A stretch of 64,000 nt of DNA from Entomortierella parvispora E1425 (lineage: Eukaryota; Fungi; Mortierellomycota): the NCBI GenBank assembly GCA_020891255.1, contig BQFW01000011.1, forward strand, positions 744,001 through 808,000, in the 5' to 3' direction. The position numbers and the translations under genes were made by a program. Below are positions 18,533-56,697 of this stretch, piece after piece. Below the pieces are notes generated by a model. The model was given only the letters and a program-made list of their open reading frames with translations. It was not told where the DNA came from and made no database searches. Each line of letters opens with the position of its first letter. Positions within the stretch are counted from its first letter, which is position 1.

Positions 18533-21500
18533 ATGTCGACAGCGATTGCCACTGCCATTGTGTCGACTGGTGTCAGAAATGTCCACACGAACGGTGTCAA
18601 AGATCAGACCCTTCCGGTCCCAAATGACCATGATTACGCCCGTTTGGTACAGGGGTTCAGTGCGCTTGGGTAAAGCAAATGACAGATAAACAGAAAAACA
18701 TCAACGTGAAGTTGTTTTCAACTGGTGCCTCTTGCTCTAACAACAAGCCTGCTGTGTGTTTTTTTTGACACGAAAACTTGAGGCATTAGATTAGAGGGGC
18801 TGGATCAAGGGGACCCAATAGCTCTGATGTACAAGGCTGGTGAAATGTATGAGAAAGGTGAAGAAGTGCCTCAAAGCAACCAAAAAGCCAAAGCATGGCT
18901 TGAGAAAGCCGCTGTTCAAGGAAACGCCTCTGCTCAAAACAGGATTGGCGTCCTTTACCGTGATGGCAAAAGTGTAAAGCAAAACTACTCTATCGCCAAA
19001 GAGTGGTTTCTTAGGGCCGCCGACCAGGGACAGGCCGAGGCGCAGTACAATTTAGGAACAATCTATTATCATGACAACTATCGTGCCAAAGCTCTGGAAT
19101 GGTTTGAGAAAGCGGCGAAACAAGGACACGCCTTTGCTCAATTCAGGATTGGCGTAATGTTTTATTTTGGCGACGGTGTTTCACAAAACCAAGAGAGCGC
19201 CTTGGAATGGTGGTTGAAAGCAGCCCACCGAGGATGTGCGATTGCCCAGTTCAGCGTAGGCGCGGTGTATGATGCTGGCGAAACTGGCGCCGTTGGTTAT
19301 CAGATTGACAGTTACGCGAATCATTGGTATTCCTTAGCGGCTGCACAGGGAGACGCCAATGCCCAATTCAACTTGGGCATCCTTTACCACGAAGGAAGAG
19401 GAGGTGTTCCGCATGATGAATTCATGGCAGTGGAGTGGTACACGAAAGCAGCTAATCAAGGCCTTGCCGAGGCCCAGTTCTATCTCGGGCACCTATATCA
19501 CATTGGTGATATCATCCCACAAGATATAGGCACGGCCATGAGTTGGTACTTGGAGGCTGCCAAGCAAGGACATTCCGACGCTTTTTTCAGGCCAGGTGTG
19601 ATGTACGATGAAGGTGATGGCGTGGATCAGGATTACCACAAGGCTGCAGAGCAGTACCAGAGAGCAGCCGAACAGGGACATCACATTGCCCAGTATAATT
19701 TGGGTGCCCTATACCAACAAGGCCTTGGTGTACAAGTGGATAAGGTCACGGCCGCAGAGTACTACACCGCAGCGGCAGAGCAAGGGGGTGGCGACGACTT
19801 ATTCAGCCTGGGGGTCATGTTCTATCATGGAGAGGATATCCCACAGGACTATTCGAAGGCTGCAGAGTTCTATCTCAAGGCCGCTGAACAAGGACACATC
19901 TCTGCTCAGAATTACGCTGGCGAAATGTACTACGACGGCCTTGGAGTGCCCAAGGATTTCGTCAAAGCTCGAGAGTGGTATTTCAAATCGGCTGATCGAG
20001 GGCATGCTCCAGCTCAGAAAAATATGGGAAAGGTCTGCTTTGACGCCAAGGACTACCAGGCGGCTATGGAGTGGTTTAAGAAGGCAACCGATCAAAAAAA
20101 CGCTGGTGCGTGGTTCTACATTGGTTTGTTGTACCACGATGGCCATAGTGTTCCAGAGGACAAGCAGCAAGCGGCGGAGTACTATCTGTTGGCTGCCAGT
20201 CAAGGATACGCAAAAGCCCAACTCAGCATTGGCCTAATGTACCAGGAAGGCAAATATGTTCCCCAGGACTACCAGATGGCCATGGAATGGATTTTCAAGG
20301 CGGCCGCGCAAGGATACGCCAAAGCGGAGTTCAGCATCGGTCTTGCATACGATAACGGCGCTGGTGTTCCTGAGGATAATGAGAAAGCGCTGGAGTGGTA
20401 TTTGAGGGCGGCCAAAAGGGAAGATCCCGATGCACAGTACAGCGCAGGCGAGCTGTACTGGCGTGATGCACAAGACTACATTAAGGCTCATGATTGGATT
20501 TTGAAGGCTGTCAAACGAGGTTACGCAAACGCCCAATACAGTCTTGGTGAATTTTACGGAGACACACATGGCGACAAGAAGGCCGAGGAATGGTACTTGA
20601 AAGCCGCCAATCAAGGACACATTGATTCCCAACTAGTCTTAGTCGATATATACCAACGAGGATGCGACGTACCGACGAACTACATGGAATCACTCAAATG
20701 GTTGTGGAAAGCTGCTAATCTAGGAAGCGCCAAAGCACAGCACGACTTGGGTCAGCTATACCATGATGGCAAGTTCCCAGATGGCAAGGGCTTTCCTCAG
20801 AGCTACAAGAAAGCCAAGGCGTGGTATTTGAAGGCCGCCAAGCAAAAGCGTGCTGATACCCAGTACAGCCTTGGTATGATGTATTACGGTGGCAAGGGTG
20901 TTCCGCAGGACTACCAGAAAGCTATGGAATGGTTGTTGAAGGCCGCCAACCATGGACCCATTAATACCAGATCTTTAATGTTAGACACTGAAAAAGGAAG
21001 CAACAAAGCCCAGTTCCAAATTGGTTTGATGTACCGCGATGGCGAGGGTGTTCATCAAGACTCCCAAAAGGCCATGGAATGGCTTACATTGTCTGACGGT
21101 CAAGCATCTTCTGAAGGCCAGAGAATGATAGCGTCAATGTACCACTTTGGCAAGGGCGTTCCCACGGACCACCAAAAAGCCTTGGAGTGGTACCAGAGGG
21201 CAGCTGAAGGGGGGCGCCCTGAAGACCGACGCTGTTTAGGCAACTTGTATGAGAAAGGCGAGTGTGTTACGCAGGACTTCCGGAAAGCCAGGGAGCAGTA
21301 CTTGGAGGCCGCTGAAATGGGAGACGTCCATGCCAAGTATTACCTGGGCCGGATGTTCCACAAGGGCAAGGGTGTTCCGAAGGACTTTCAAAAAGCGATG
21401 GAGTGGTACTTGAAGGCGGCTCAAGGTAAACATATCGATGCTCAATATGCCATTGGCATGATGTACCAGCAAGGCGACGGCGTTTCGCAGGACTATTCCC

Positions 21501-22150
21501 AGGCAGCAGAGTGGTATATGAAGGCTCACGAGCAAGGGCACCTCCGTGCTCAGTTCCATATCGGTTCTGTGTCGCATGCTTGTTCCCTCTATGATCACGC
21601 CATGGAGTGGTATTTGAAGGCCGCCGACAAAGGAGATGCCGATGCCGAGTACTCCATAGGCCGCATGTACTATGAGGGCCATGGGGTTCCTCGAGACTAT
21701 CAGAAGGCTTTGGAGTGGTATTTGAAAGCTGCGATGAAAGGAAATATGTTTGCCCAGTATGCTGCAGGCTTGATGTATCAGGATGGCCAAGGTGTTCCCA
21801 AGGACTATCAGGAAGCCAAGAAGTTGATACTGAAGGCTGCCAATCAAGGATTCTCTGATGCGGAGGTCAGTGCAGGCAAGATGTACCATCATGGGATGCT
21901 CCATAATGATGTCGGTGTTTCCATAGACTACCAGGAAGCCATGACATGGTATCGGAAGGCTGCCCATCAAGGTGTGGCAGAAGCTCAATTCAACATTGGT
22001 TGGTTGTACCATGCAGGCAGGAGCGTGGAGGGGCTGGACGAAAATAAGGCCAGGGAGTGGTATGAGAAAGCAGCCCGACAAGGACACGCTGATGCCATTT
22101 ACAACCTTGGCTTGATGTGTACACTGCCAAAAATTACAAAGTCACTGTAG
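18533..22150 (+). CDS. Large Sel1-like repeat (SLR) protein, roughly 28-30 repeats
   Basis: 1107-aa open frame of ~36-aa repeats (AQYNLGxxYxxGxGVPQDYxKAxEWYxKAAxQG). A short first exon from ATG 18533 is inferred. Confidence 0.9.
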
Positions 22151-24320: not shown

Positions 24321-25807
24321 CTACGACTTTCGGGGAGGCGCTTTGACTGGTAAATCCAGAGCCTCCAAGTACGTGCGCTGTTCGTCTACTATAGCCTGCA
24401 ACTCCATTTGGAGAATACGGTCCCTTTCTATCGGGTCTGAAAGAAACTGGATCATGTCAAGATCCTCCAACTTGAAATCTGCTCTCTGTCGTCGTTTTGT
24501 AATGCTCTTGTAGAGTGGGTGCCGGACTGTCGCAGGTGGAGGGCTTTGGACTTGCCAGGACTGTAGGGAGGAAGCATAGGTCCTGTATTCACTGGACGAC
24601 ATACTAGAAGAAGATTCATCCGATTCGTACGCGTCCATGTCGTTCTTGACCCTTTCATAGGCGCGCATCTCAGTGATGAGCCAGTCCAACCTCTTTTCGC
24701 GGTACGAGAGAAGTTCCAAAATGGTGGTCGCCCGAGCAGCCATCCGCAGCTGTCGGAACATATCGGATTGCATGCCGGTAATAGCCCACCGTGAGATGCA
24801 AGCCATCGAAAAGTGCATCGTCGCGAGACAGATTGTGGGTGCAAGTGGAAATAGCAGTGTTGGAATGAAGGAGCCGCTGGGAGGTGATGGCGTTGGATTT
24901 GTGCTCGAATTGGGAGCGAGTCCCCAAGGGACAAGTGAGGACCTGGGAAGAAGGAAGGAGCTGATTTTGTTTCCGATCCATCGTCCATATGTGAAAATCC
25001 AGGAACCATACCGAGCAAAGGAGTTGGTCGAGACAAAATAACGAACAGCCACCAGGCTTCCAAGACTGAAATACAAGAAAAAAGGGACATTTAGTTCCTG
25101 TGGAGCGCGTTTTCTTGACAGGTGAGGCGGGTGCGGCAAATCTCTGACTTACATGGTGGATGTTATCACGTTATAGTGCATGTCGAGGAAGGTGCGATCA
25201 ATGCTGGTAAGGAAAGTAATGGCTGTTGTCTTGATGGACTCGCGACCAGCCCGACTGCTTTTGTACAAGTTGCGTATCCGTTCCAATTCAGCTTTTTAGA
25301 CGATTTGTAAGGGAGAGGGTTGGTTAGGTAAGTAAGGTCATCAGTCAGTCCTCCAGAAAAGATAGAGCGATGGATGCGCATCCTCTCTGCAACAACACGC
25401 ATACCTGTTTCGATCGTGTGCGCATTCAGGGTTGGTAGGTCGTGTTCTTCCTCACTGGACCACTCATCCATGCTGGATCTGCTATTATTATAAGAGGACG
25501 AAGATCGTCTCCTTGCCCGAGCCAGTCCAGACAGCCTTCTGCTCTGCTGAAGGCGTTGTTGCGAACGGTCGTTCAGTCGCCGAAGGAGAGGCGTGATCTC
25601 GGTTATGAGGTCAGAGAAGTGACTGAGGTTTCCGAGTGAGTGTCGGAGGAGTAGTCGCTGAGTGCGGTCGTAGCTGGTATTGAATTCTGAGCAGTAGCCG
25701 CGCGTGAAGAGGTAACTGCGGTGGCAAAGGTGGACATGCACCATGGCCGCCAGACCATGGCCAAGCGAGAGGTGGAGAAGCGATGTCCCTTCGGGCGATG
25801 TAGACAT
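24321..25807 (-). CDS. Hypothetical membrane protein, about 2 exons
   Basis: Two long same-strand ORFs separated by an intron-like gap; hydrophobic segments (FFLYFSLGSLVAVRYF; LLFPLAPTICLATMHFSMACIS); no family recognised. Confidence 0.55.
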
Positions 25808-25822
25808 TGAAGAGGATGTAAG

Positions 25823-25955
25823 GAAGGATGGAAGGATGGAAGGATGGAGGGATGGAAGGAAGGAAAGAAGAATGGAAAGGAGGAAGGAAAGGAGGAAGGA
25901 AAGGAATGAAGGAAGGAGAGAAAGGAGAGAAAGGAGAGAGGTACAGGCAAGGCAA
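25823..25955 (+). repeat. Homopurine (GGAA/GAAG-type) low-complexity tract
   Basis: aggaaggatggaaggatggaaggatggagggatggaaggaaggaaagaagaatggaaaggaggaaggaaaggagg..., almost pure purine. Confidence 0.85.
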
Positions 25956-26443
25956 GGCAAAGCAATGGTGCCATCCCAACAGCATGCGGACGACCACTGC
26001 TTGCATCGCAGTCACAACGCGCGCTCTTGCCACAAAGAGGGAAGATCTCTCCTCTTCTCCTCCTCTTCCCCATCATCCCCATTCCTCCCATTTCTTCTTC
26101 TTCTTCTTCTTCCCACAGCCACTCGTCCTCTCATCTCTGTCGCTGCTCATCCTCATCTTGACCATCGGGCCTTGTAAGCAACTGCCCCTCACAAAGGGCC
26201 AACTGACGAACATGATCTTCCCCACTCCATCCGAGGGGTCTCATGTGTTTCTCTTCTTTTTGCTCTCTTGCATACCACGCATATGCTGTTCTCCCTTTGC
26301 TCAAACCGCGTATTGTTGTTCTTTGCTCTAGAATCAAGCGAGGTTTGCTCTCCCTTTCTCGTCGTCTGTTCCCACGCAGACCTCCACTTTCTTTCTGTCC
26401 TCTCCCAAGAGGACTTCATAGTCACTCCTACCCCCCCCCCCCC

Positions 26444-32508: not shown

Positions 32509-33300
32509 GTTTTTGTTTTTTCTGTGATGTATTTCCTGTGTTATCTGATTTTGATTTTTTGTGGTCCGGGGAAGGGTTGTGGAGCAAGGTTGTGTTTGTT
32601 GGAAAGGTTGTTTCCTGGTGCTTGTTGGAAAGGTGGATGGGGAACAAGAGGAAAAGAAAAGAAAAAAAACTCGACCTATGGAGGGAGCGAATGGCTTGGT
32701 CATCCTTCGCGCAGTCACGCTCGGGAAGGAAATCAGCCGCGTTGAGAGTTCAGACAAGGTTTTCTCATCTTTTTCGCTCTGGCGCATGTTGGTCTTCCCT
32801 CCTTTCCCCGTGCTCGATATGATCGAACCGAACCCTCGAGTCAGCTAGGTGAACTCCCATGGTCACGATCACTACCATGGCCATGGTCCATGACTGTAAT
32901 TGATCGACCCCTTACGTGAGGGCATGCCGAAGAAATATGTGCTCGTTCACACACAAACAACACGCGATCGTTCGAATCGCGATAAAGACCGACCAAATGC
33001 AAACACAGCCTGCGCAAACGGACCTTGATCGCTGTCCGACAGTTTGTGTGCTTCTACCCTTCACCTCACTATAGTGAAGAGACTGGGGTGTTTTATGGCT
33101 AAACCTGTCACATGGGGCTAGACAGGGGCCCGAACCTGTGGATGTTATCTGTTGATCCAAGTTAGGATGTACCGATCGGAGGTTTATACAAGCCAAAGAA
33201 GGGTATGAGAAGCCGCTGCAGGTACCACCTATTAATTCCCCAGAACTATCAGAATGCCATGGAATGGTTTTTGAAGGCTGCTGATCAAGGACAGGCCGAT

Positions 33301-33578
33301 TGTCACAGAGATGGTCATCTCTGACCTTGGTCACATGACACTAGCCCTCTCTGGATAGGACGCGATGGTTCTAGATCTCTCCATAGCTATAGAACGGCGC
33401 CTAGGATTACTAAGGACTTCTAGAAGAGTCTTCATAGCTCAATATATAGAAGATATAGCACGACAACGAATAAACATCATCAATTACTTACCAGAATACG
33501 ATCACCCTGACCCTGTTTCCCTGACCTGATCTCTTCCTTTCCGCCCGTTCCAGATAAACTTTGCCCAAGTTTATTACA
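33301..33578 (+). repeat. 5' LTR (278 bp)
   Basis: Starts TGTCAC, ends TTACA, contains TATA-like aatatataga and AATAAA; tRNA-iMet-type PBS TGGTAGC at 33579-33585. Confidence 0.8.
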
Positions 33579-33755
33579 TGGTAGCAAAGGCAAACCCTGT
33601 TCTACCCCACACCTGAAATCCTAGTACTAGCCTGGCCTCCAGAAAAGGCAATGCATTCCGCTCTTTCCGTAACCTTGCCCCGGCACCCGACTCATCAGAC
33701 GAATCCGAACCTCCGAGCCCTACCTCCTCTTCCTCATATAATCCCAAACAACACA

Positions 33756-34565
33756 ATGACCACCGTTTCCCCCGAATCTATCCTTCGAGGTCTCCGCCCC
33801 GAACCGTTCGACGGCAAGCACCGAGACCACCGGGCGGAAAACTGGTTCATCCGATTCGAATGCTACTGCAACGCAGCTCAAGTCTCTGCACAAGGACAAG
33901 ACCGCATCACCTTTGCCAGTCTCCTACTGACAGGTGTCGCATCCCAATGGTTTGAACAACTTGGCACAATCACAGCTACAACGACCACTGATGGAAAACA
34001 CATGTCAGCCTACGACGTGTTCAAGAACAAGTTCCGTCAGCGCTTCATAAACGCAAACGATTCATTTGACGCTTTCGATCGTATCAGAGAATTACGACAA
34101 AAGCGATCTGTCAACGAATACGTTATACAGTTCAAACAACTCCGCAGCCGCCTTTCGAATTTTGACAACGAGCTAGCCGTTAAATTCTTTCGAAGTGGCC
34201 TCAAACCCGAGCTGCGCCAACTTGTTGACAACCACCCCGAGATCGCCGAGAATGATATCAACGGCCTAATCTCTCTCGCTGAGCGATTGGACCGAATGAA
34301 ATATGAACGTCCCCATTATTTTCAACCCCGGAATTTCCACAAGCCCCAACGAATGACTTCGAACCAGGAAGTCTACCCCCAACCTATGGACCTGGATGCT
34401 ATCCAAGCCCACCCAAACTCCCGTTCCAAGCTCCAACAACCATCAAACAAGACTAAGGAAACTGACTTTGCGAAAGGCAATTGTTTTTATTGTCACAAAC
34501 CTGGTCATCGTATCAATGATTGCCCCGAGCGAAATAAGAAGTCGGTAAACTTCAGAGAGAATTAG
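33756..34565 (+). CDS. Retrotransposon Gag
   Basis: PEPFDG...NWF, LLLTGVASQWF, LRQKRSVNEYVIQF, FFRSGLKPELR, PQPMDLD, CFYCHKPGHRINDC. Confidence 0.9.
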   Translation: MTTVSPESILRGLRPEPFDGKHRDHRAENWFIRFECYCNAAQVSAQGQDRITFASLLLTGVASQWFEQLGTITATTTTDGKHMSAYDVFKNKFRQRFINANDSFDAFDRIRELRQKRSVNEYVIQFKQLRSRLSNFDNELAVKFFRSGLKPELRQLVDNHPEIAENDINGLISLAERLDRMKYERPHYFQPRNFHKPQRMTSNQEVYPQPMDLDAIQAHPNSRSKLQQPSNKTKETDFAKGNCFYCHKPGHRINDCPERNKKSVNFREN

Positions 34566-35169
34566 ATACCTCTGGAGATCTGGTGGGCCATCCCGAACCT
34601 GAAAACCCGAAAACTCCAGAACCATCTGTTCCGAAGAGTCCTGTTTCTATTCCCGAACCTATGGAAAAGAAAACAAAGATCAAGAACATGCCCACCCAAG
34701 TACAAGAGTCACAAGAAAGGAAACTTGTGAATGACCAAGAACTCCTGAAGCAATTGAGATCGAAGCTGAACTTCCACTCGATGCAGTCTGAACCCGAACC
34801 CGAACCCGAACCCGAACCCCACCTGAACCAAGTATCCGACAAGAATAACGAAGAGTCCATGACATCCAAACCGTTATTGTACCTGCCCGCTAAGATTAAG
34901 CATGCCAAAGTACACTTCATGATTGACAGTGGCGCTTCAGGCAATTTCCTGAGTCAGGACCTCGCCCGACACCTAAAGCTGACGACTCACAAATTCAAAA
35001 CGCCCCGAAGTATCACTTTCGCCGATGGTCGCGAGTCCCACACCATCCAGCGATACTGCCTCCTGAAAATCCCGTTCAGTCCCGAATATCAGCCGATATT
35101 ATTATTCTCCATAGCTCAAGTTGCCCATGGAGCCTTCCTTGGACAAACCTGGCTACAATCCTCAGGTGG
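34544..35169 (+). CDS. Truncated Pol (aspartic protease) in the -1 frame relative to gag
   Basis: The -1 frame is open from GGTAAAC (GKLQRELDTSGDLVGHPEPE...) to VHFMIDSGASGNFLS...AFLGQTWLQ. Confidence 0.8.
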
Positions 35170-36592
35170 AATAATATAGGTGTGGTGTACCAAAATGGTC
35201 AAGGCGTCCCTCAGGATCATCAGAAAGCTATGGAGTAGAACCTGAAGGCTTCAGATCCAATTCCCAATACAGCATTGGCAAGCTGTATCACCATAGCAGA
35301 GGTGTTACCCAAAGCTTTAAAGGAGCCTTGAGGTGGATTCTGATGGCGGCCGTTCAAGGACACGTCGTTTCTCAGTATCAAATAGGATAATGTGTCGTTT
35401 TGGTGAAGGAGTCAGCCAGGATGACTGAAAAGCTATGGACTGGTTTTCGAGGGCGGCCAATCAAGGATAGGCTAAAGCCCAATACAACGCCCGCTTTATA
35501 CTTCATATGGGTAAAGGTGCTCTTCGGCACTGTTGGAAAGCTGTGGAATGGTATTTGAAGGCTGCTGATCAAGGACACGTCGGTGCTCATTACAACTTGG
35601 GCGTGATGTACCTTGAAGACGAGGGCGTTACCAAGAACTACCAAAAGGCTATGGAATGTATTTTGAAGGCCGCCAAACAAGGACTCCAAGGCCCAGCGAA
35701 ATATTGCCGTGGTACCGTGGCGGCCTGGGCGTTGCCTAGGATATACAGAAAGCTCGGGAGTGGTTTGATAAGTCCGTCGACCTAAAAAAAAATTGAAATA
35801 GCCCAACAATGTCCCACCCCTCACTGCTGAGATTTACTCTTGAAGCGCGGGCAGGGAGAAGGTCCACTCTGTGGGTGGGGCCACAAACACTGGGAAGCAA
35901 GGACCCCACTCGCCTTTGAGGCATGGCTGCTATGAATACTGGACTTACTTTTTGAAAATAAACTGTGACAATTTCTTCCTGTTGGCCTCTTGACAATGGG
36001 AAGAAAAAACCGGAGTTCAAGTAGAGAGAAACACCCCTTACAGCAGCCTTGGGAGTTGTATTGATCGAATCTGTTGATATTCAGTCATTTTCATCTCGTC
36101 ATTAATGATGAATGATTAGGCTGGTCTGATCGTGTTAGCACCTCCATGGTATTTACCCAACAGGACGTCTCTTCCCTGTAATGCTCATCGAGCCAGCATC
36201 TTGCAAGAATGCGGACCAAATCTCGCCCTCCTGAAAAGAACACAGGCGCTGTCCACGATTGAAGCCGCCTCCTAAGCTCACACGCTGTTGTATTCTTGCG
36301 CCAAGTCGATGGAGTGATGGGGAAAAGAGAGGGCCGCTTGTTGTGTGTGTGCGCTTTTTTTTTTTTTTTTTTGTTCCATCAAGTTTTTATTCTCATTCTT
36401 TCTAGACACTATGTTCTGTGGACCTTGTTGTCTTGGCTCTTGGCTCTTGAGGATCTGTTCACTTTTCTTGGCTCTGCTTCTTGAGGACCGGCTTGTCAGT
36501 TCTGTTCTTGAGGATCTATCCCTATTAAACCTCTTGCCAAAGAGGGGTGGGTGGGAAGGGGAGGGGTGGACAGGGAAGGAAGCTTACCATAT

Positions 36593-36947
36593 CATCAAGT
36601 CATCAAGTCATCAAGTCATCAAGTCATCGAGTCATCAAGTCATCAAAGCCAACAAGTCATCAAGTCATCGTAAACAAGACAGCATTCACACATCAAAGCA
36701 TCATAATCAACATAGCATCCATACATCAAAGCCAACAAGTCATCAAGTCATCATAACAAACATAGCATCCATACATCAAAGCCAACAAGTCATCAAGTCA
36801 TCATAACAAACATAGCATCCATACATCAAGGCATCATAACCAAGATAGCATTCAGCATTCATACATCAAAGCATCATAACAAACATAGCATTCATACAAC
36901 AAGTCATCATACATCAAGTCATCATACATCAGGTCATCAGGAGCATC
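36593..36947 (+). repeat. Hierarchical minisatellite in the left arm ((CATCAAGT)x6 plus a 50-bp unit x2.4 plus degenerate units)
   Basis: 50-bp unit catagcatccatacatcaaagccaacaagtcatcaagtcatcataacaaa at 36711-36760 and 36761-36810. Confidence 0.92.
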
Positions 36948-38915
36948 TATCCAGCGGACAAGAGTGAGTGTTTGGTGAGTGCAAGGTTCGTTTCGTTGGG
37001 GAGACAGACTGGGAAAGAAACTGGGAGAGATGGAGAAGGGCTAGAGGCAAGAGTGTTAGGGCAAAAAGCAGGAAAAGCGAAAAGCTATTAGTGTTGAAAG
37101 CAGAAAAGCGGAGAGGAGAGCAAACAGAACATCAGGCGGCAGCTTGGCGAGAAGAGCGAGTGAAGTATTGGATGCGAAGGATGGAAAAGGTGATAGAGAG
37201 GTATGGACAACGGGGCGAGAGAGGGTGGGAACGGTGGATGGGTGGTGGGGCATGGGCATGGTGGCGTGGAAAGGGAAGTGAAATGGGTGAAGAACAAAAA
37301 GAGAAAAGGCGAAAAGCGAAGCAGATAAAGGCAGGCCACACGCACGCACGCAACGTCAGAGGAAGACGGCAACATCGTACAGGCTTCGCTGTTGCTGTTG
37401 ACTGGGAGGGAGATAGGGGAGGAAAGGCAGAAAGAGGAGGACCGAGGAAGAGAGGTGAGAGAAAGAGACGACGGACGGACACACGGGATTGCCAGAGCTG
37501 ATCAAACTCTTTTTTCTTTTTTCTTGTTTTTTTTTTTTGCTTTTTTTTTTTCTTGGGGAGAGGTCCTTTCGTTCAACTGGCAAGACGAAAGGGAATCTGA
37601 AGTAGGAGTGAAGAATGGAGAGAATCTGGAAAGAGAGAAGCTGGAGCACGAGGTGGGGGCAACATCTGCGTTCTGATCTATAATGAAGATTGAGAAAGAG
37701 AGAGAGAAAGAGAGAAAGAGAAAGAAAAAAAGAGAGAGAGATCTCTTGGACAAAACTGATCACCGAGTAGAAGGCCCTTCCTCTCTTCTCTCTCCAGAGG
37801 ACACGCCTCGCTGCACCAGGAGAAAGAGAAGAAACGAAGGAAGGTGCCGATATTGTCAACAAAGCGTAACGTTAGCCAAGATCTTGTGCCTGCTTTATGA
37901 TCAGGGACAAGATGACCATGATACATGGTCCAGAACTCTCTCATCTATTTCTTCTGGCGCTTCACGCTCAACAGCTGTCAATCCTTCCTAACTTGACGGG
38001 CCCACAAGCACCGACAATGTCTGTCAAGTAGCGGAAAGAAGGCTGATGGTCATAACGCGAGGCGTGTCCTTCGGGGGGAAGAGAGGGTATTCTGCTCTAT
38101 AATCAAGCTTGTCCAAGAAATGTCCTTTCTTTCTTTTTTTCTTTCTCTTTCTCTCTTTCTCTCTCTCTTTCTCAATCTTCATTATAGATCAGAACGCAGA
38201 TGTTGCCCCCACCTCGTGCTCCAGCTTCTCTCTTTCCAGATTCTCTCCATTCTTCACTCCTACTTCAGATTCCCTTTCGTCTTGCCAGTTGAACGAAAGG
38301 ACCTCTCCCCAAGAAAAAAAAAAGCAAAAAAAAAAACAAGAAAAAAGAAAAAAGAGTTTGATCAGCTCTGGCAATCCCGTGTGTCCGTCCGTCGTCTCTT
38401 TCTCTCACCTCTCTTCCTCGGTCCTCCTCTTTCTGCCTTTCCTCCCCTATCTCCCTCCCAGTCAACAGCAACAGCGAAGCCTGTACGATGTTGCCGTCTT
38501 CCTCTGACGTTGCGTGCGTGCGTGTGGCCTGCCTTTATCTGCTTCGCTTTTCGCCTTTTCTCTTTTTGTTCTTCACCCATTTCACTTCCCTTTCCACGCC
38601 ACCATGCCCATGCCCCACCACCCATCCACCGTTCCCACCCTCTCTCGCCCCGTTGTCCATACCTCTCTATCACCTTTTCCATCCTTCGCATCCAATACTT
38701 CACTCGCTCTTCTCGCCAAGCTGCCGCCTGATGTTCTGTTTGCTCTCCTCTCCGCTTTTCTGCTTTCAACACTAATAGCTTTTCGCTTTTCCTGCTTTTT
38801 GCCCTAACACTCTTGCCTCTAGCCCTTCTCCATCTCTCCCAGTTTCTTTCCCAGTCTGTCTCCCCAACGAAACGAACCTTGCACTCACCAAACACTCACT
38901 CTTGTCCGCTGGATA

Positions 38916-39270
38916 GATGCTCCTGATGACCTGATGTATGATGACTTGATGTATGATGACTTGTTGTATGAATGCTATGTTTGTTATGATGCTTTGATGT
39001 ATGAATGCTGAATGCTATCTTGGTTATGATGCCTTGATGTATGGATGCTATGTTTGTTATGATGACTTGATGACTTGTTGGCTTTGATGTATGGATGCTA
39101 TGTTTGTTATGATGACTTGATGACTTGTTGGCTTTGATGTATGGATGCTATGTTGATTATGATGCTTTGATGTGTGAATGCTGTCTTGTTTACGATGACT
39201 TGATGACTTGTTGGCTTTGATGACTTGATGACTCGATGACTTGATGACTTGATGACTTGATGACTTGATG
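38916..39270 (-). repeat. Mirror copy of the minisatellite in the right arm
   Basis: Reverse complement of 36593-36947; the + strand reads (ACTTGATG)n / ATGATGACTTG. Confidence 0.92.
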
Positions 39271-40049
39271 ATATGGTAAGCTTCCTTCCCTGTCCACCCC
39301 TCCCCTTCCCACCCACCCCTCTTTGGCAAGAGGTTTAATAGGGATAGATCCTCAAGAACAGAACTGACAAGCCGGTCCTCAAGAAGCAGAGCCAAGAAAA
39401 GTGAACAGATCCTCAAGAGCCAAGAGCCAAGACAACAAGGTCCACAGAACATAGTGTCTAGAAAGAATGAGAATAAAAACTTGATGGAACAAAAAAAAAA
39501 AAAAAAAGCACACACACACAACAAGCGGCCCTCTCTTTTCCCCATCACTCCATCGACTTGGCGCAAGAATACAACAGCGTGTGAGCTTAGAAGGCGGCTT
39601 CAATCGTGGACAGCGCCTGTGTTCTTTTCAGGAGGGCGAGATTTGGTCCGCATTCCTGCAAGATTCTGGCTCGATGAGCAATACCGGGCAAAGACGTCCT
39701 CTTTCAACAAAGAGCGCGCACGGCCGACTGACTTTAAGTTGAATTTGCATTTTTGTGTTACTGTACCACAGAGTGGGGACTTTGCCGACCGTTCAAGGGC
39801 TTACAACTGTGCATCCATATGCACGCATCACCCCGAAAACGTACTTTCATCCTTTCGAGTGCACGCCTTCCTTCTATCTCATAAAGTCATGAAAGCCACG
39901 TTGGTCTCGTTCTGTTGGCTTGTTTTATTCCCATTTGGGCCACATTTTTCTACTCATTCAGCCAGCCCTCCTATACCGTCCTCCCTCATATCTCACCATG
40001 GCTGAATTAGAAAATAGTAGTTTATTTGCAAAAAGATTGTGGTTGTACA

Positions 40050-43000
40050 TTACTCTTTGTCGTGCCGCTTGAAAAGGTCACTCAAGTGCATCGCGCCGCG
40101 CGAAGAAGACCCAGCAGCCGCTGACGGATCAGGACGACTACTGTTCTTGTTGCTAGTGCTCGCGCCTTCTTCCATCTGCGTATCCTGCTCAACTCGGATG
40201 CGGTCCTGTTCCTCAATATCGCGGCTCACAACCCTGACCACACCATTGTCTTCCTCCCGCTCAACCTCATGTATCCTGGTCACAGGTGCTTGCTGTCCTC
40301 GATGAGTATTGACTGGTGGTCGGAGACTGGATGTGGACCGAGAGATACGTGATCCAGCTTCACCCGGGCTGCTTGCGGGCGACTCCGATGGGATATGAGG
40401 ACCCATGGCATGGGTTGCGGGGTGGTTCTCTCTCAGGGACTTTTCGATCTCCTCCGTCTCAATCTCCTCTGATTCGTTCGAGTTGGCTCTTGAGCTGGAC
40501 CGACTCTCGTCCTCTCTCCTGGGAATATCAAAACTAATGCTGGGTTGTGGTGTTTCTCCATTGCTGCTACTGCCACTGGTATTGTTGTTGTTGGCGATCG
40601 TGTTGCGGTTAGCCGCTGCGCCTCTGGAAGCCTCCTTCATCTCCTTTACGACATCTTGTAATGTCCTGACTGTGTTGTTGTTATTGTAGGGCTTGCTCAG
40701 ATCAGGAACTCCAGCAATAGGGAAGCCGCCATAAGGGACACTTCCACCATAACCATATGACCGCTGGTTCACAGAGCGCTGATGGTCATATCCGATGGAT
40801 CGTTGGTTATCAAAGCCCACAGACCGCTGGTTGTCATAACCAATCGAACGTTGGTTATCGTATCCAATTGTCCGCTGCTCCCCATCGCCATCGCCCTGAA
40901 CACTGGATCCACTGATCGTCGGTGGTCGCAAAACAATTTCGTCTCCAATGTTGATATGAGGCAGACGAGAGACGGCATGATTGCTATCCTCGCGTTTCCT
41001 GGACCAAGTGCGGGTGTACGTGTATTGAAGATGAAGCAGTGGGACTGTGACACCATGAATCAAAACCGAGGAAAGTACCATGAACATCACAATAGGAAAG
41101 ATGACGGCTCGAACACGGTTCAACTTGTCAAGGTTATAGGCATCCTCGCCTAGATCCTCAGTCATGGCAGCCGTGACCTTGGAAAAGAAGACAGCTCCGA
41201 CACCAATGGGTCCAAACCATCCTGCAAAAGCCGCCTCACGATAACTGCCTAGTGCTGGAATCAGCGGTTTGAGAGCCACGACAAAAGGTAATCGGCGGAG
41301 CATGAGAATCGCAATCGCCAGCACGACCAGACGCCACACAGACAAGCTCAAGGTCGAATCGGCAAAGCTAGAAAAGGGGATTGATGCCCCAATATAGACG
41401 AAACACGCCAAGTTCAGCAACATATCAATGATTTCCTGAATGTGAGCCTCTGCAATCTCGTTTGAGAACCAATCGCTATTTTTTTTATAGAACAGGGGAA
41501 CAGGAGTGACGGTTAGTGCTGATGATACTTTGGATATTCATTCATCGACGTTGGTTACAAGAAAAAAAGCGAAGCATACTCCCAAGCAAAGACATTTCCA
41601 GCAATAAAGCAGGCAAGCAGATCGTCCGAAGCAAGAATACTGACAATACCAGCTACGGCCAATGCGAGAGCAATCGAGAACACAAGGAAAGACTCTTTGT
41701 CAATCAAGTTTCTATAAATGAGAAGAAAGGTTCAAATGGTCAATACTCCTCGATTCAATTTGTAGGCAGGCTCTCATACAACCCTGGTATTCTCTCTGGA
41801 TCGTTTCGTACCTGTTCTTTGCCCCCTTCACCAGTTTTCTGGCCGCTGCACCGATAACGCCACCAATGACAATACTGAGAATGATTTGGTATGCCCAGAC
41901 AAGGTAGAACCATTTGGCAATAGCGGTTCCTGTTGTTGGCTCTTGCAGGAGATAAAGGCCCAGGAACAAAAATGGCAATCCCATGCCGTCGTTGATACCA
42001 GACTCTGCAGACAACAGGTAGCGGATGCGAGGAGGCACATGCTTCTCTGCGAATCTTCCCTTGACCACAGAGTTGGACAAGACGGGATCTGTGGGTGTAA
42101 CACATGCTGCGATGACCATGGCCTCGACCTAGATTATTCAAAGAGTCGGTGGTTTTTTTTTTTGATTTTGAGGGTCAGTTCAATTGTAGGGATATGCGCA
42201 GTTTGTCCAACCTTGATGATCTATTCTTACATAACCAAGGTTGGGAATAATGCCCCAGATGAGGAGGGCCGATGTGCACCACATCATAATCATCAATGGT
42301 ACGATCATCATAAACAGAGAGAGTCTTTCCTTGACAATATAAGACCTATGTCATCGTAAACAACACGAGGAATGGTAAGTCGATATCCGGCTGAACTGCA
42401 CTTGCTTTTTGCCGCCAAGGGAGGCCGGGGTCGTTGGCCCCCAGTTCAAGCAAAAAAGAAGAGACTGGAGCGGAACATTCTTGTTCCTGAGGAAAGAGAG
42501 GGTCTGATCACTGGATTCCAGAAGCGAGGGCTCTCCATCCCTCGAAGTTCGTGTTCATTCATCTGCAGCTCTCAGTTGTTGATTTTTTGTTTGTCGCGGG
42601 AAAAGAGCGCGCCTTACCTCGGTAACGACACTCCAGCGGCCATCACCTGGACAGCAATGACGATTCTTGTTAGCTCGAGCGTGACGGTGTCATACTCAGA
42701 CCACCCCATGGGATCGAAGATGCCGATGGCATAGGGGCCAATGATGATTCCAAAAGCCGTGGATACGACTAGAGTAGCGTGGAGGTAGAGTTTAGTCGGA
42801 GGCACGATGACGATTAGCGCGAATGTGCACAGCAGCAAGAACACTCAGCACGAGGGGTGACAGAAACAGAATACATCCCCCCATCCGCCCCTTTTCCTTT
42901 CTGCATCTCCAAGAGGGGGCGAGGTAAAAGTCAGGGTCACCATGAAGGTATTGTAATGACAAGGAAAAGATGGGTGGCAAATGAAAAAAGCTTAAAATAA

Positions 43001-44037
43001 GACTTGTCGTGTGGGCGGAGCTCCGCTTTGATTTCGCTCTGTTCCCTGCTCTGTTCCGTGTCTGCGCAGGTCCCTGTCGACTCTCCTGCATCCGGGATCA
43101 GGATCACCGTTGCCTGTATGCAGAAACGCAATTGAAAAATAAAGGAGCATCGCATGGCAAGACTGAGAATCCAACCCTGTCCTGGGCCGAGGCCATTCGA
43201 GTCAGCAGATCAAAAACCGACAATGTACAAAATGGAACAACCAGAAAGAACAAGGAAACTCGATGGATGAACAATTTGGCCGAACTGTTCCTCGGTAACT
43301 TTTTCTGTGTTTGGCTCTCTGGTCGTCATCCAATCTTCCCATCCTGCCCTTGCCCACCCTCACACCACGCTTGCCCCCATCCAGAGAAGGCAACGTGCCT
43401 GTGCTCCGACTCAACTTCTATTTCGGTTCTTCTTTAACCAGGAGAGGCAATGGACAGGTTGCACCTTTACAGCCATCAACATTAAAGGCAACTTCTCCTC
43501 TTTTCTCCGGTCTCCATGCCTGCACTACCTGCCCGTGTACTGTATCCCCTTTTGCACAACACTATGCACTACAACCCCTAGCTCCGTTGTTTTGCGGGCG
43601 ATTGTTTCCAAACAGAAACAAACAAAGGAAAAGAGTTGGGGAGTACGAAGAGAGCAATTCCAAGAATTGTCCATTTTTTTTTTGACCGATTCGCCATTCT
43701 TCGGTACCCAAAAATCTCAGCTGGTCTGTGTGCGGGTGATCCTTCATATCATCAGCGAAAGAATACAGAGAATCCATAGCACAACCAAACTGAAAGCAAG
43801 CTATCACTTGTGGGGGGCGGAAGGTGCCCCTGGCGTAGGGTATCTCATCAAAAGAAAGGGAAAGCTGAAGAAAGTGCTGAAAAAAGACGGCGCAGAGGGC
43901 GGTTACTCACATGCTTCTGAGATAAAGAGCTTTTCCTTGACAAACAAGCTGACGAGACCAAAAAAGATGATAAAACAGCCGAGGAGTGCATAGGCAATAT
44001 GCTCGGGTGATGCCTCAAGCACCAGGGTCGTGGACAT
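40050..44037 (-). CDS. NHA1: Plasma-membrane Na+(K+)/H+ antiporter, Nha1/Sod2 (CPA1) family, multi-exon
   Basis: Exon 1 MSTTLVLEASPEHIAYALLGCF...KEKLFISEA; TPTDPVL, LSAESGINDG, LRRLP, FAGWFGPIGVGAVFF, SSVLIHG. Confidence 0.92.
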
Positions 44038-44814
44038 GGAAAGGGATCAGTTTCTGATAGAGTGGAGGTGCGCGGAGAGCGATGTGAGGGGAGAAGAAAG
44101 TGGCCTTTCTTTCTCAGTGGCAACAACCGTTGAGGAAGAGTGAAAAAAGGAGAAAAGAGCGAGGCTATGATCCAGTGATGAGAAGAGAGGAAGGAGGAGC
44201 GGATCAAGCAAATATGAGCGGGGTGGAGGAGAAGGAGGAGGAGTAGGAGGAAGTCGAGGTCGGTCGACGGAGAAGAGGAGTGGAGAAGAGGAGTGGAGTG
44301 GAGAAGAAAGGTGATGGCAAAGAACAAGAAGCAGAAGCAGAAGAAGGGCCAAAAAAAAAAAAAAAAAAAAACAAACGTCAGTTGCACTTTAAAGTTCAAG
44401 ACCTAAAATAAGTAAGTTGGAGAAAGCGAGGGAGAAGGATGCCCCGGATGATACAGTAGCGAAGGTCGAGAACAAGGGGGGTGAAGGAAAGGTAGAGGAC
44501 CAGAGAACAATGGCAAGGATTGAGGAGCACTAGAGTTGGATGCAATGCGACTGGTCGATGTCACGATGCTCTTGTGAATGGAAAGAAAAAAAAAACGAAA
44601 AAAAACCAGCAAATAGGCAGAAGCGCAGATCGTATGCACGTGATACGCCACCAATTTGTTACTTTTGTATTATTTATTCTGCAAAGGAGAAGGGGAGGGT
44701 ATAGGTGAGAATGTAGTTGTTATCTTCATGCAGTTGCATGCATTGTCGATCGACCTTTCTATATGTAATCAGGCTTGCACAAGTCCGTTCCACTTGCTAG
44801 GTTCCGTTTAAAAT

Positions 44815-54200: not shown

Positions 54201-56697
54201 CCAGCGCATCCGTCCTTCATTCTTCATCACTCAGCAATTTCTTGTCCTCAGCAGTGAAAAACAGCGCCTTCTCCTCGCTGGACCCGTTCTTTTGTCATCC
54301 ACGGACCCCACATCAAGCCTGATCGTGCCCCACGCCCCTCTCAACACCTCTCTCTGTCTGCCCTTGACCCCTTCTTTCTCTTGCTTCCATCCTCTATCAG
54401 CTGTCCCTCCTCTTTCCTCATCTTTGACCATCGACTTTCTCCTTTTCACCCACCTTCCTGGCTCTTCCTTCTTTCTCCTGTTTTCCACCCATTCTTACAA
54501 ACGCACTCATCAATCAGTCCCTTTCCCATACCTTTGTCAGCAAGTCGCGACAGGCACCATCAAAAGAGCTCGACGTTGAACGAACCGTCTCACACCGAAC
54601 AACAGGAGCCTGCGTAGGTCATCCTAAAGAACGAAGAGCGTTCTCTTTCTTCTATTGCATTCCTCCTCTTGGTAGCTATTGCCTCACATCCACGGTTCCT
54701 TTTTTTTTTTTTTTTTTTTGTTCTTTTATGAGCTTTCTTGGTCTCTATCCTTTCCTATTCATTCTATTTGGCACTTTCAACTTATTCTGCTGCTGGCACT
54801 TTCATCCTCGCACAAAAAAAATGGATACACAGCAATCGTGTTCAGTTCCCCAGTGACCCCACCCGTCCATTCGTTGTAGATCTTTCGCCCGGGGGCCTCC
54901 CCCCTTCTCCTTTTCTCTGTCCCCCCTCTTTTGCATTTGCGATTGCATTTGCATTTAACATTTTGTACCCAAGAGGGATAACAGCCCCTATCTGTCGAGC
55001 AGTAGGTCCTCGTTTTTTTTACTCTCTTTCTTCTTTTTCCGTTCTCATGTTTCCTTTTACCACACGCAGCCCAACGACCCCTGGTCTGTTTACATGTGCC
55101 TTACTGGACCCAGACCTTCTCCTGCCCCCTGTCTCCTCTTTCCCCCATCTCGATTGATCGGCCCAGCTTACGCACAAAATGACCTTTGTGTTATTTGGTT
55201 GGTTCCAACAGATTGGAATAAGGAAGGAAGAGGAGGGAAAAGAGGGAAAGGAGAGGAAGGGTTCAGGCGAAAGGGGGCCTGGGTCTCTTTTGGCTTGTTC
55301 TCTTTTGGCTTGTTCTCTTTCAATGGGTCCACCTGTGGGTTCCTGCAGCGAGCGATACACGAACGAGCCTTCATCCTTCCACAACTTGTTTTTTCTGTGA
55401 TTGCTCGTCTCTGCTCACCTCAGCAGCGCACAGCTCTTTTTCTTTTCTTTTTTTTTTGTTGTTGTGTTTTGTAATTGATTTTCCCTCTCCTTTCTTCTCG
55501 CTTCGGTGTTTTCTACTGTCTGGGTCCAGGAACGGCAGGCGAGAGCGCTCATTCACAGTATGGGGTGCAGTGCAGGCACACAGTCGAGATGGACGTCCCC
55601 CCTCCCCCTTTTTTTATTTTCTTTTCGCTCGCATGTCATTGTGCTGCATTGGCCAGAGGGTGACCTACATGCAAAAGGGTACAACACCGTTCATACATGG
55701 ACCTACTTTACTGAGAAAACGGAATGCTCTCATTCTACACAGTCTTTCATTGGGAAGGCGTGTCCTCTCATTTGCTCGAGCGGATGAGCCAATGAGGCCG
55801 TTGGGAAATGAGCCGATGGAGAGCAATGATGGATCTCCAACCGCAGGAGACTGGTGATGAGTAAAAATAAAGAGAAAGACGGAGCGACAGCAGACTGACG
55901 GCACGAAGCAGGACTGAGAAGGGATGGAGGAGCAAAAGAGAGAGAGCGCGCGCGCGAGCGAGAGAGAGATATATACAAGGAAACAGGAAATGAGAAAAAG
56001 AGAGACAAGAGTTAGAGAGAGCAGAGCGGGCAGGCAGCATGGTTCACGAGAAGAAGAAAGGAAGAACGGGGAACAGCGGACACGCATGGGCCATGGCCCA
56101 CTCACGCGTCGCATTTTATTTATATCGTTTCGTGTTCATTTCGTTCTTTTTTTTTTTTTTTTCTTTCTTCTTTTTCTTTCTTTTTCTTTCGTCCCTCTAC
56201 CTTTCCTTTCTCTTCCCTTCTTTCCTTTCTTATTCCACTGTTGTCCTTTTCTCTCTCTGTCCTTGTTCCACACTCCTCTCCTCACCCAGGTTCTAACCAT
56301 TCCTTCTGCTTATTCCCTCACCATCACCCATTGCCTCGATCGCAATTAGATCTTCGTTGCTTCTGCCGAGGACCCAAGCCCGTGTTTTTTTGGAACCACC
56401 TCAACGAATATTTTCCCATCCTCCTCCAATAGTCTCCTTGAACGATAGCTCAATTTCTCGGCACCACTTGAACCACTCTCTTGATTGATTACTTGAAAAT
56501 CTCCTCAGCTATCCGTCGTCTCCTCTCCTCCTCCTCTTTTTGCCTCCTCTTCCTCCCTCCTCCCTTGCGATCCTCTTCGAATCTGCATATTGTCAGAACA
56601 AGGCAGTTCTAAATTGCCATTGCTCTGACCCGAAACAACTTTTTTGACTCCTTCAACAAATCCCACCACGACGTCTTCCCAGTACTCCCATTCCGCG

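Follow-up and report, generated by a model that had tools for sequence, protein, structure and literature searches.

[quoted passage not shown] The duplication is probably young, neutral and subject to concerted evolution.

An inverted repeat search and minus-strand self-blastn of the window (the whole 64-kb stretch of DNA analysed, to which positions below refer) placed the left arm at 36162–37811 and its reverse complement, the right arm, at 38057–39700, neither assigned to a strand. The arms are 97.9% identical over an alignment of 1,653 columns (23 mismatches, 10 gap openings), do not differ at all over 36356–37526, and are centred on an axis near 37931–37934. An initial annotation, made from the sequence alone, had described a 3.5-kb palindrome with near-identical arms of ~1.6 kb, an axis at ~37931 and an indel-free match between 36547–37501 and 38362–39316 with a constant coordinate sum of 75863; the palindrome is real, and these particulars are correct. 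The centre (37812–38056, 245 nt, no strand) is unique and single copy by depth. It contains a mini-hairpin at 37914–37930 (GACCATG-ATA-CATGGTC; 7 bp, 3-nt loop) lying ~10 nt from the axis, and we considered whether the palindrome had arisen by fold-back at this short inverted repeat, but the halves of the centre have no in-register mirror similarity (score 20 versus 14.5 ± 2.4 in shuffles, with the best match out of register). A comparison of the outer flanks of the arms showed no similarity between them, no target-site duplication was present in the flanking sequences compared (TATTTACCCAACAG on the left, CTCTTTCAACAAAG on the right), and no further long copy of the arm sequence was found elsewhere in the window.

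SMARTdenovo produced the assembly from Nanopore 1D reads, a provenance that would allow for a chimeric fold-back read or for a repeat that had been collapsed or wrongly joined. For an independent check we used Illumina-derived Logan contigs, which were built without the Nanopore assembly and, being contigs, contain no single molecule spanning both arms. They agree fully with the assembly across the two outer junctions, the inner junction on the left and the centre (0 mismatches), and the contigs at 35400–36236 and 39626–40400 bear the arm-specific variants of the outer edges, again with 0 mismatches. Contig depth was ~74–80 in the flanks, 87–90 in the centre (contigs 37750–37854 and 37830–38059) and 118–151 in the arms, giving relative depths of ~1x for the centre and ~1.5–2x for the arms. 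Because the junctions are reproduced at these depths, neither a fold-back artefact nor a high-copy MITE is likely; as most of the arm lies at ~1.5–2x flank depth, other near-identical copies are not expected. With the junctions confirmed, the short reads leave only the orientation of the middle ambiguous. A fold-back artefact would be expected to show arms without differences, no genuine spacer, flanks that are the same or missing, and no independent support, whereas here the flanks of the two sides differ, the centre is unique and the edges have diverged. An assembly artefact is thus highly improbable, despite a conflict between the Illumina contigs and the assembly at a microsatellite (38497–38510), where the assembly may be wrong. 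The sole contig there, 122 nt at 38447–38560, has a depth of 321 (~4x), an 8-nt TGCG insertion and a T>C change. An alternative contig at ~37781–37855 (depth 68, ~1x) extends out of the left arm and into the ‘centre’, and loose contig ends lie at 38070 and 38560. Together, the 4x contig, the alternative contig and the two loose ends are hints of diverged extra copies or of heterogeneity.

Differences between the arms are distributed very unevenly. The identical core of the left arm (36356–37733, 1,378 nt) aligns with 38132–39507 in the right arm (no strand assigned) with zero substitutions and two 1-nt indels in T runs, at 37527 and 37541. The outer edge is eroded over ~190 nt (36162–36355, mirrored at 39508–39700), with one indel and eight substitutions, six of them in the outermost 45 nt; the inner edge (37734–37811, 78 nt, mirrored at 38057–38131) has 14 substitutions and several indels. 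Substitutions thus number 0 in the 1,378-nt core versus 22 in the 272 nt of edges (Fisher P = 1.3 × 10−17), and a core without substitutions has a probability of 1 × 10−8 under a uniform rate. Because differences cluster at the arm edges and the core has no substitutions, the pattern indicates arm-to-arm gene conversion, for which arm identity far above that predicted from age, combined with non-uniform divergence, is the characteristic signature. A single conversion event in the very recent past, as opposed to an ongoing process, could also account for the perfect 1.4-kb core. RIP-like mutation was ruled out, as about half of the edge differences are transitions and there is no C>T bias.

In the reading that we propose, remains of retroelements and pseudogenes were inserted as a 7.5-kb island between the genes for an Na+/H+ antiporter and a thiolase, and the palindrome lies within this island. 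The second copy of the arm could have originated by segmental inverted duplication, or by two insertions of a low-copy repeat. The arms would recombine with each other, with non-crossover gene conversion holding the 1.38-kb core of each identical; the edges (~190 nt on the outer side, ~78 nt on the inner side), which most conversion tracts would not reach, would drift apart. The eroded inner edges together with the 245-nt centre would separate the identical cores by ~400 nt of dissimilar DNA, a spacer that, by analogy with yeast and Escherichia coli palindromes, should make the structure tolerable in replication. A crossover between the arms would invert the middle and alter nothing else. [quoted passage not shown] The E. 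parvispora palindrome has in common with them two inverted arms, a unique spacer and near-identity through intrachromosomal gene conversion, as we infer it here. Sex-chromosome palindromes, however, span 10 kb–1.5 Mb, carry expressed gene families and are partly conserved by selection, whereas this one is 3.5 kb long, non-coding, lineage-specific and fungal. It would offer a small, clean case of concerted evolution in the nuclear genome of a fungus, with arms that are identical midway and eroded at both ends and so mark where conversion tracts stop.

The palindrome is surrounded by a patch of debris that is specific to the species. To the left of the palindrome lie a relic of a Ty3-type gag with a zinc knuckle and aspartyl protease (33651–35179, + strand) and fragments of a Sel1-repeat gene (35314–35785, + strand); to the right, the gene for the 755-aa Na+/H+ antiporter (40050–44037, − strand) comes to within 350 nt of the right arm at its 3′ end. 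The spacer between the antiporter and thiolase genes, which contains the Ty3 relic, the Sel1 fragments and the palindrome, is 7.5 kb here versus 0.4–0.8 kb in Gryganskiella cystojenkinii, E. beljakovae and E. chlamydospora. At the same locus in these three species we found no match to 32560–40010, with only the gene ends aligning, and the palindrome is absent from this intergenic position in all three. The initial annotation had argued that a structure of this size, being maintained, suggests a function, whether as a hairpin-RNA locus, as twin lncRNA genes, as a foldback element or as a chromosomal structural site. Maintenance is borne out in so far as the cores stay identical and the edges decay, but the conclusion that this reflects a function is unsupported: homogenization by gene conversion requires no selection. 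The absence of the locus from the three relatives, its position amid retroelement and pseudogene debris, and a probable RNA-seq run with no contig across it also count against that conclusion, and the palindrome is probably neutral. RNA, small-RNA or CenH3 activity, if true, would raise the importance of the locus; nothing found points there.

The arms are of low sequence complexity. A degenerate minisatellite with an 8-nt unit (TCATCAAG) and higher periods of 25, 33, 40 and 50 nt occupies 36592–36939, mirrored at 38924–39271. The segment at 36908–37523 is purine-rich on the + strand and CT-rich on the − strand, where it resembles a promoter or 5′ UTR pointing outward (leftward); its mirror at 38341–38956 is CT-rich on the + strand and points outward to the right. 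Comparable tracts immediately precede the genes that start at 44037 (− strand) and 26444 (+ strand). The outward orientation of the arm tracts, which matches that of gene promoters elsewhere in the window, is not predicted by a purely neutral reading. On the outward (+) strand of the right arm, an AATAAA at 39472–39477 is followed by a run of 17 A at 39491–39507 (mirrored by TTTATT at 36386–36391 and a run of 18 T at 36355–36372); the A run is not special because the 64-kb window holds 13 A/T runs of at least 15 nt. We considered whether this order of a CT-rich 5′ part, minisatellite, AATAAA and A run marks a retrocopy or SVA-like retroposon and rejected it, since the repeat extends 190 nt beyond the A run, A/T runs are frequent in the window and there is no target-site duplication. 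A G-run motif of the G-quadruplex type lies at 36544–36575 (+ strand), with the mirror C run at 39288–39319. Arm sequence showed no similarity to the tract upstream of the antiporter gene or to any other sequence in the window, and a scan of metagenome contigs with two arm 26–27-mers returned 0 matches.

The palindrome had been called non-coding and devoid of a recognizable transposase or target-site duplication, and this largely stands. Its ORFs are of low complexity and no protein relatives were found for them in two word-index searches, an exhaustive HMMER search and a Pfam search of ten ORFs, so a hidden protein gene was dismissed. The one correction concerns a gene model of the public annotation for a 314-aa ‘Ty3 capsid’ protein, the terminal exon of which (36164–36275, + strand; the last 37 codons, with TAA at 36273–36275) starts at the left boundary of the repeat (acag/GACGTC) and lies within the outer edge of the left arm. 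This is probably not a real exon, because its copy in the right arm differs at 7 nt, four of the seven differences being non-synonymous. Rfam gave nothing at gathering score; the best hit was MIR156, which scored 29.5 bits (threshold 62) over low-complexity GA/CT sequence.

Several readings would assign transcription to the locus. A second run of the same sample (X2), guessed to be RNA-seq, resembles such data in its contig depths (7–236), its ~25 Mb of assembled sequence and a contig that ends 26 nt after an AATAAA at 35956–35961. Over 36068–40075 it yielded no contigs except two short, low-depth pieces of minisatellite, a result that bears the uncertainty over the kind of run and comes from contigs that show presence, not absence; it suggests that the palindrome is transcriptionally silent. 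Each arm might nevertheless be a non-coding gene transcribed away from the centre, the two forming twin lncRNA genes with a CT-rich promoter and 5′ region, then the minisatellite, then the AATAAA. The outward CT-rich tracts, with their likeness to those upstream of the antiporter and RNA-ligase genes (starts 44037 and 26444), and an outward-strand AATAAA placed 14 nt ahead of the A run would suit such genes. CT-rich tracts are also found downstream of genes, however, and the frequency of A/T runs in the window, the near lack of arm contigs in the probable RNA run and the absence of conservation in the three relatives make twin lncRNA genes quite unlikely. Long inverted repeats that give rise to siRNAs from hairpin RNA occur in Drosophila and plants, and the palindrome is like these loci in that it would give perfect dsRNA if transcribed through. 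The neighbouring transcription units do converge on it, and any transcript passing through the centre would form a near-perfect hairpin: the inner 998 nt have a predicted folding energy of −749.5 kcal/mol (z = −61), and read-through would provide ~1.4 kb of perfect dsRNA for Dicer. Against this, AATAAA signals are present in both neighbours, each of which appears to end ahead of the arms (35956–35987 and 40021–40026), no X2 contig crosses the locus and the arm sequence has no match elsewhere in the window, so a hairpin-siRNA locus is very unlikely.

Should the contig irregularities described above stem from members of a dispersed family, what looks like a local duplication may instead be mobile or repetitive in nature. 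The arms might be two copies of a dispersed low-copy repeat in inverted orientation, one of them truncated; alternatively, the entire palindrome might be a DNA transposon of the foldback or long-TIR type in non-autonomous form. Transposition would then have produced the palindrome incidentally in a region that collects mobile elements, as the other debris in the island suggests, and gene conversion could still explain the cores. Foldback and long-TIR transposons such as Drosophila FB likewise have long inverted arms and internal tandem repeats, and are non-coding in their non-autonomous forms. The palindrome differs from them in lacking a target-site duplication, sharp ends and a demonstrated family; on either side, identity tails off gradually instead of stopping at a sharp terminus. 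With no transposase or other protein or Pfam relative for any ORF, most of the arm at ~1.5–2x flank depth, and no further copies in the 64 kb or the metagenome contigs, we consider a mobile element unlikely. A more radical reading takes the palindrome for a compact centromere. Komagataella phaffii centromeres comprise 2-kb inverted repeats and a 1-kb core, are chromosome-unique and untranscribed, and show polymorphic inversion (PMC5010909). Those of K. phaffii and Candida tropicalis and the imr-cc region of Schizosaccharomyces pombe (PMC5010909, PMC7292649) share with the palindrome a kilobase-scale identical inverted repeat around a short unique core, as well as unique sequence, an apparent lack of transcription and a potentially invertible middle. 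By this anatomical analogy, the locus would be a centromere of the K. phaffii or fission-yeast-core type, a transcription cold spot with a 0.25–0.4-kb core and 1.4-kb homogenized repeats, newly formed in E. parvispora, and it would be the first centromere described for Mortierellomycotina. The apparent silence of 36068–40075 in X2 agrees with it. Yet the core is only 245 nt, expressed genes end 175–350 nt from the arms and the syntenic site in the three relatives lacks the locus, which leaves a centromere barely plausible.

Less radically, the locus may be a recombinationally active flip-flop or a hairpin-siRNA locus. Flip-flop inverted repeats are known from the plastid IR and the yeast 2-micron plasmid, where recombination inverts a segment and homogenizes the arms. 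The palindrome resembles these in its identical inverted arms; here, the invertible segment would be ~0.4 kb of non-coding nuclear DNA, and its inversion is a prediction. Under the neutral duplication that we favour, the locus would equally provide a simple system for testing mitotic recombination between arms and flip-flop inversion.

The inverted repeat is real: a repeat search and a minus-strand self-blastn both recovered its arms (record coordinates on BQFW01000011.1, GCA_020891255.1, are window coordinates + 744000). The repeat search returned three collinear arm pairs, 36356–37560/38303–39507 (99% complementary), 37509–37740/38125–38356 (95%) and 36159–36371/39491–39703 (96%), which self-blastn united in a single alignment of 36162–37811 with 39700–38057 (1653 columns, 97.9% identity, 23 mismatches, 10 gap openings). 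Global alignment of the arms upheld the indel-free block and the coordinate sum of 75863 reported in the initial annotation. The 245-nt centre (37812–38056) is unique, and its halves lack in-register mirror symmetry (best local score 20, out of register, versus 14.5 ± 2.4 in shuffles). The outer flanks are unrelated to each other, and the 64-kb window holds no further copy of the arm sequence. A mini-hairpin (GACCATG ATA CATGGTC, 37914–37930; 7-bp stem, 3-nt loop) lies ~10 nt off the geometric axis; chance alone would place ~0.09 mini-palindromes of this kind in the 245-nt centre.

The assembly was made with SMARTdenovo from Nanopore 1D data (409x) and polished with Nanopolish and Pilon. Independent contig evidence came from Logan contigs of two runs of the same sample, X1 and X2, of which X1 behaves like a HiSeq DNA run. 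X1 contigs in the flanks have a depth of 74–80. Two of its contigs (35400–36236 and 39626–40400) cross both outer junctions, carrying the arm-specific edge variants without mismatch, and two others (37750–37854 and 37830–38059, depth 87–90) run across the left inner junction and through the centre; arm contigs have depths of 151, 123 and 118. Single-copy junctions combined with two-copy arms can be reconciled in a de Bruijn graph only by a palindrome; the one thing that short reads do not fix is which way round its middle lies. Judged by X1 contig depth, a high-copy family is unlikely.

Some contigs depart from the assembly. At a microsatellite (38497–38510, mirror 37353–37366) the only Illumina contig, a 122-nt X1 contig at 38447–38560 with a depth of 321 (~4x), has a T>C change and an 8-nt TGCG insertion (TGCGTGCG). 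Because this variant is the sole contig there, the assembly may be wrong at the microsatellite in both arms; alternatively, or in addition, ~2 further copies of the short piece may exist elsewhere. One loose contig end lies at 38560. Another, at 38070, links the centre's right side with an inner edge resembling that of the left arm; together with an alternative contig at about 37781–37855 (depth 68, 1x; 37816 C>T, 37824 A>G), it may stem from a partial third copy or from differences between nuclei.

Divergence between the arms is concentrated at their ends. In the global alignment, the sole differences over the core (36356–37733, 1378 nt) are two 1-nt indels in T runs, versus 8 substitutions in the outer 194 nt (6 within the outermost 45 nt) and 14 substitutions plus several indels in the inner 78 nt. 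Under a uniform rate, zero core substitutions has a probability of about 1e-8 (Fisher's test of core versus edges, 1.3e-17). This pattern is that expected if gene conversion between the arms homogenizes the interior; the arm boundaries, rarely within conversion tracts, would go on diverging. Arm-to-arm conversion occurs in sex-chromosome palindromes (PMC8600007, PMC8327919), and the identity gradient suggests the same process here. The identical cores are separated by about 400 nt of unlike DNA (eroded inner edges and centre). Judging from palindromes in yeast and E. coli, hairpins or cruciforms should form far less readily with a spacer of ~400 nt, and by this analogy the palindrome should be tolerable.

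The adjoining 457-aa ORF is 100% identical to an Entomortierella parvispora sodium/hydrogen antiporter, and the public annotation is empty from 36276 to 40049. A thiolase gene comes immediately after the antiporter in Gryganskiella cystojenkinii, E. beljakovae and E. chlamydospora, across a spacer of 0.4–0.8 kb (loci L002:2544–3242, L003:9475–9897 and L005:4351–5119), whereas the E. parvispora gap spans 7.5 kb (32509–40049). Nothing in the antiporter–thiolase loci of these three relatives matched 32560–40010; given this and the 7.5-kb gap, we place the palindrome in DNA gained by the E. parvispora lineage. The adjacency is kept across Mortierellaceae, and among the loci compared the 7.5-kb gap is found in E. 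parvispora alone, which makes it a datable insertion island.

The left flank carries a Ty3-type gag, zinc-knuckle and protease relic plus Sel1-repeat fragments. The relic (33651–35987), with an aspartyl protease but without RT or integrase, is annotated as a 314-aa gene. The final exon of this 'Ty3 capsid' model starts at the exact left repeat boundary and stops at 36275; since the right arm's version of the exon shows 7 nt differences, of which 4 are non-synonymous, we regard the exon as an artefact of gene prediction. One candidate reading of the relic is an expressed, truncated or domesticated gag-protease gene, the 3' portion of which extends through Sel1 fragments. Degenerate Sel1 fragments (33245–33305 and 35314–35785) are scattered either side of the relic, and a large Sel1-repeat gene (1107-aa ORF, 108-nt repeat period) lies at 18827–22150.

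Read from outside inward on the + strand, the left arm comprises about 190 nt of ordinary sequence (36162–36340), a T18 run (36355–36372), a G-run motif (36544–36575), a degenerate minisatellite (36592–36939) built on the 8-nt unit TCATCAAG with longer periods of 25–50 nt, a 600-nt tract of >70% purine (36908–37523), a T-rich run (37510–37551) and a GA repeat (37692–37741). Every ORF of the palindrome is low-complexity. Those of 177, 203 and 168 aa had no relatives in a 5.8-billion-protein index or a HMMER scan of 1.84 billion representatives, 0 of 10 ORFs matched Pfam, and Rfam gave no match at threshold. The palindrome is non-coding, as the initial annotation had it.

Stranded RNA-seq has been deposited as DRA013164. 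Run X2, labelled 'DNA?', looks like RNA-seq because of its assembly size (about 25 Mb), its spread of contig depths (7 to 236), a 2.5-kb contig (depth 233) covering the gag relic that ends at 35987, 26 nt past an AATAAA (35956–35961), and an empty 36068–40075. Across that interval, single-copy centre and flanks included, X2 has no contigs except two short minisatellite pieces (depth 7–17), which speaks against DNA because any DNA run must contain the centre and flanks. If X2 is RNA, the palindrome would be near-silent in mycelium; one contig end at 40077, within the antiporter coding sequence, does not sit quite neatly with this reading.

Our favoured reading, held with moderate confidence, is that non-coding DNA was duplicated in inverted orientation in this lineage, probably without selective effect, and that the two arms evolve in concert. 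It seems unlikely that the arms are inverted copies of some low-copy repeat or that the structure is a foldback element; the palindrome ends bear no target-site duplication. Twin outward non-coding transcription units are a distinctly unlikely alternative: the CT-rich tracts of the arms face outward, and tracts like them occur just upstream of the antiporter start (44037) and an RNA-ligase gene start (26444), but such tracts are also found 3' of genes; similarly, the outward strand has an AATAAA 14 nt ahead of an A17 run, yet the window has 13 A/T runs of at least 15 nt.

We doubt still more that the locus is a read-through source of hairpin siRNA, although any read-through transcript would be predicted to fold back on itself almost perfectly (inner 998 nt: −749.5 kcal/mol, z = −61). 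An assembly artefact is highly improbable, both outer junctions, the left inner junction and the centre being recovered by X1. Equally improbable is a centromere like the inverted-repeat centromeres of K. phaffii: in anatomy the palindrome matches these well (PMC5010909), but its site is missing from relatives.

Strongly purine- or pyrimidine-skewed tracts of 300–700 nt also lie upstream of gene starts at 25600–26376, 43937–44655 and 55734–56597, arranged between divergent genes as R-rich/Y-rich pairs. They may form a genome-wide signature of promoters or 5'UTRs, although some are found downstream of genes. If X2 is the RNA-seq library of the genome paper, its 'DNA?' label hides the run from RNA-restricted searches.
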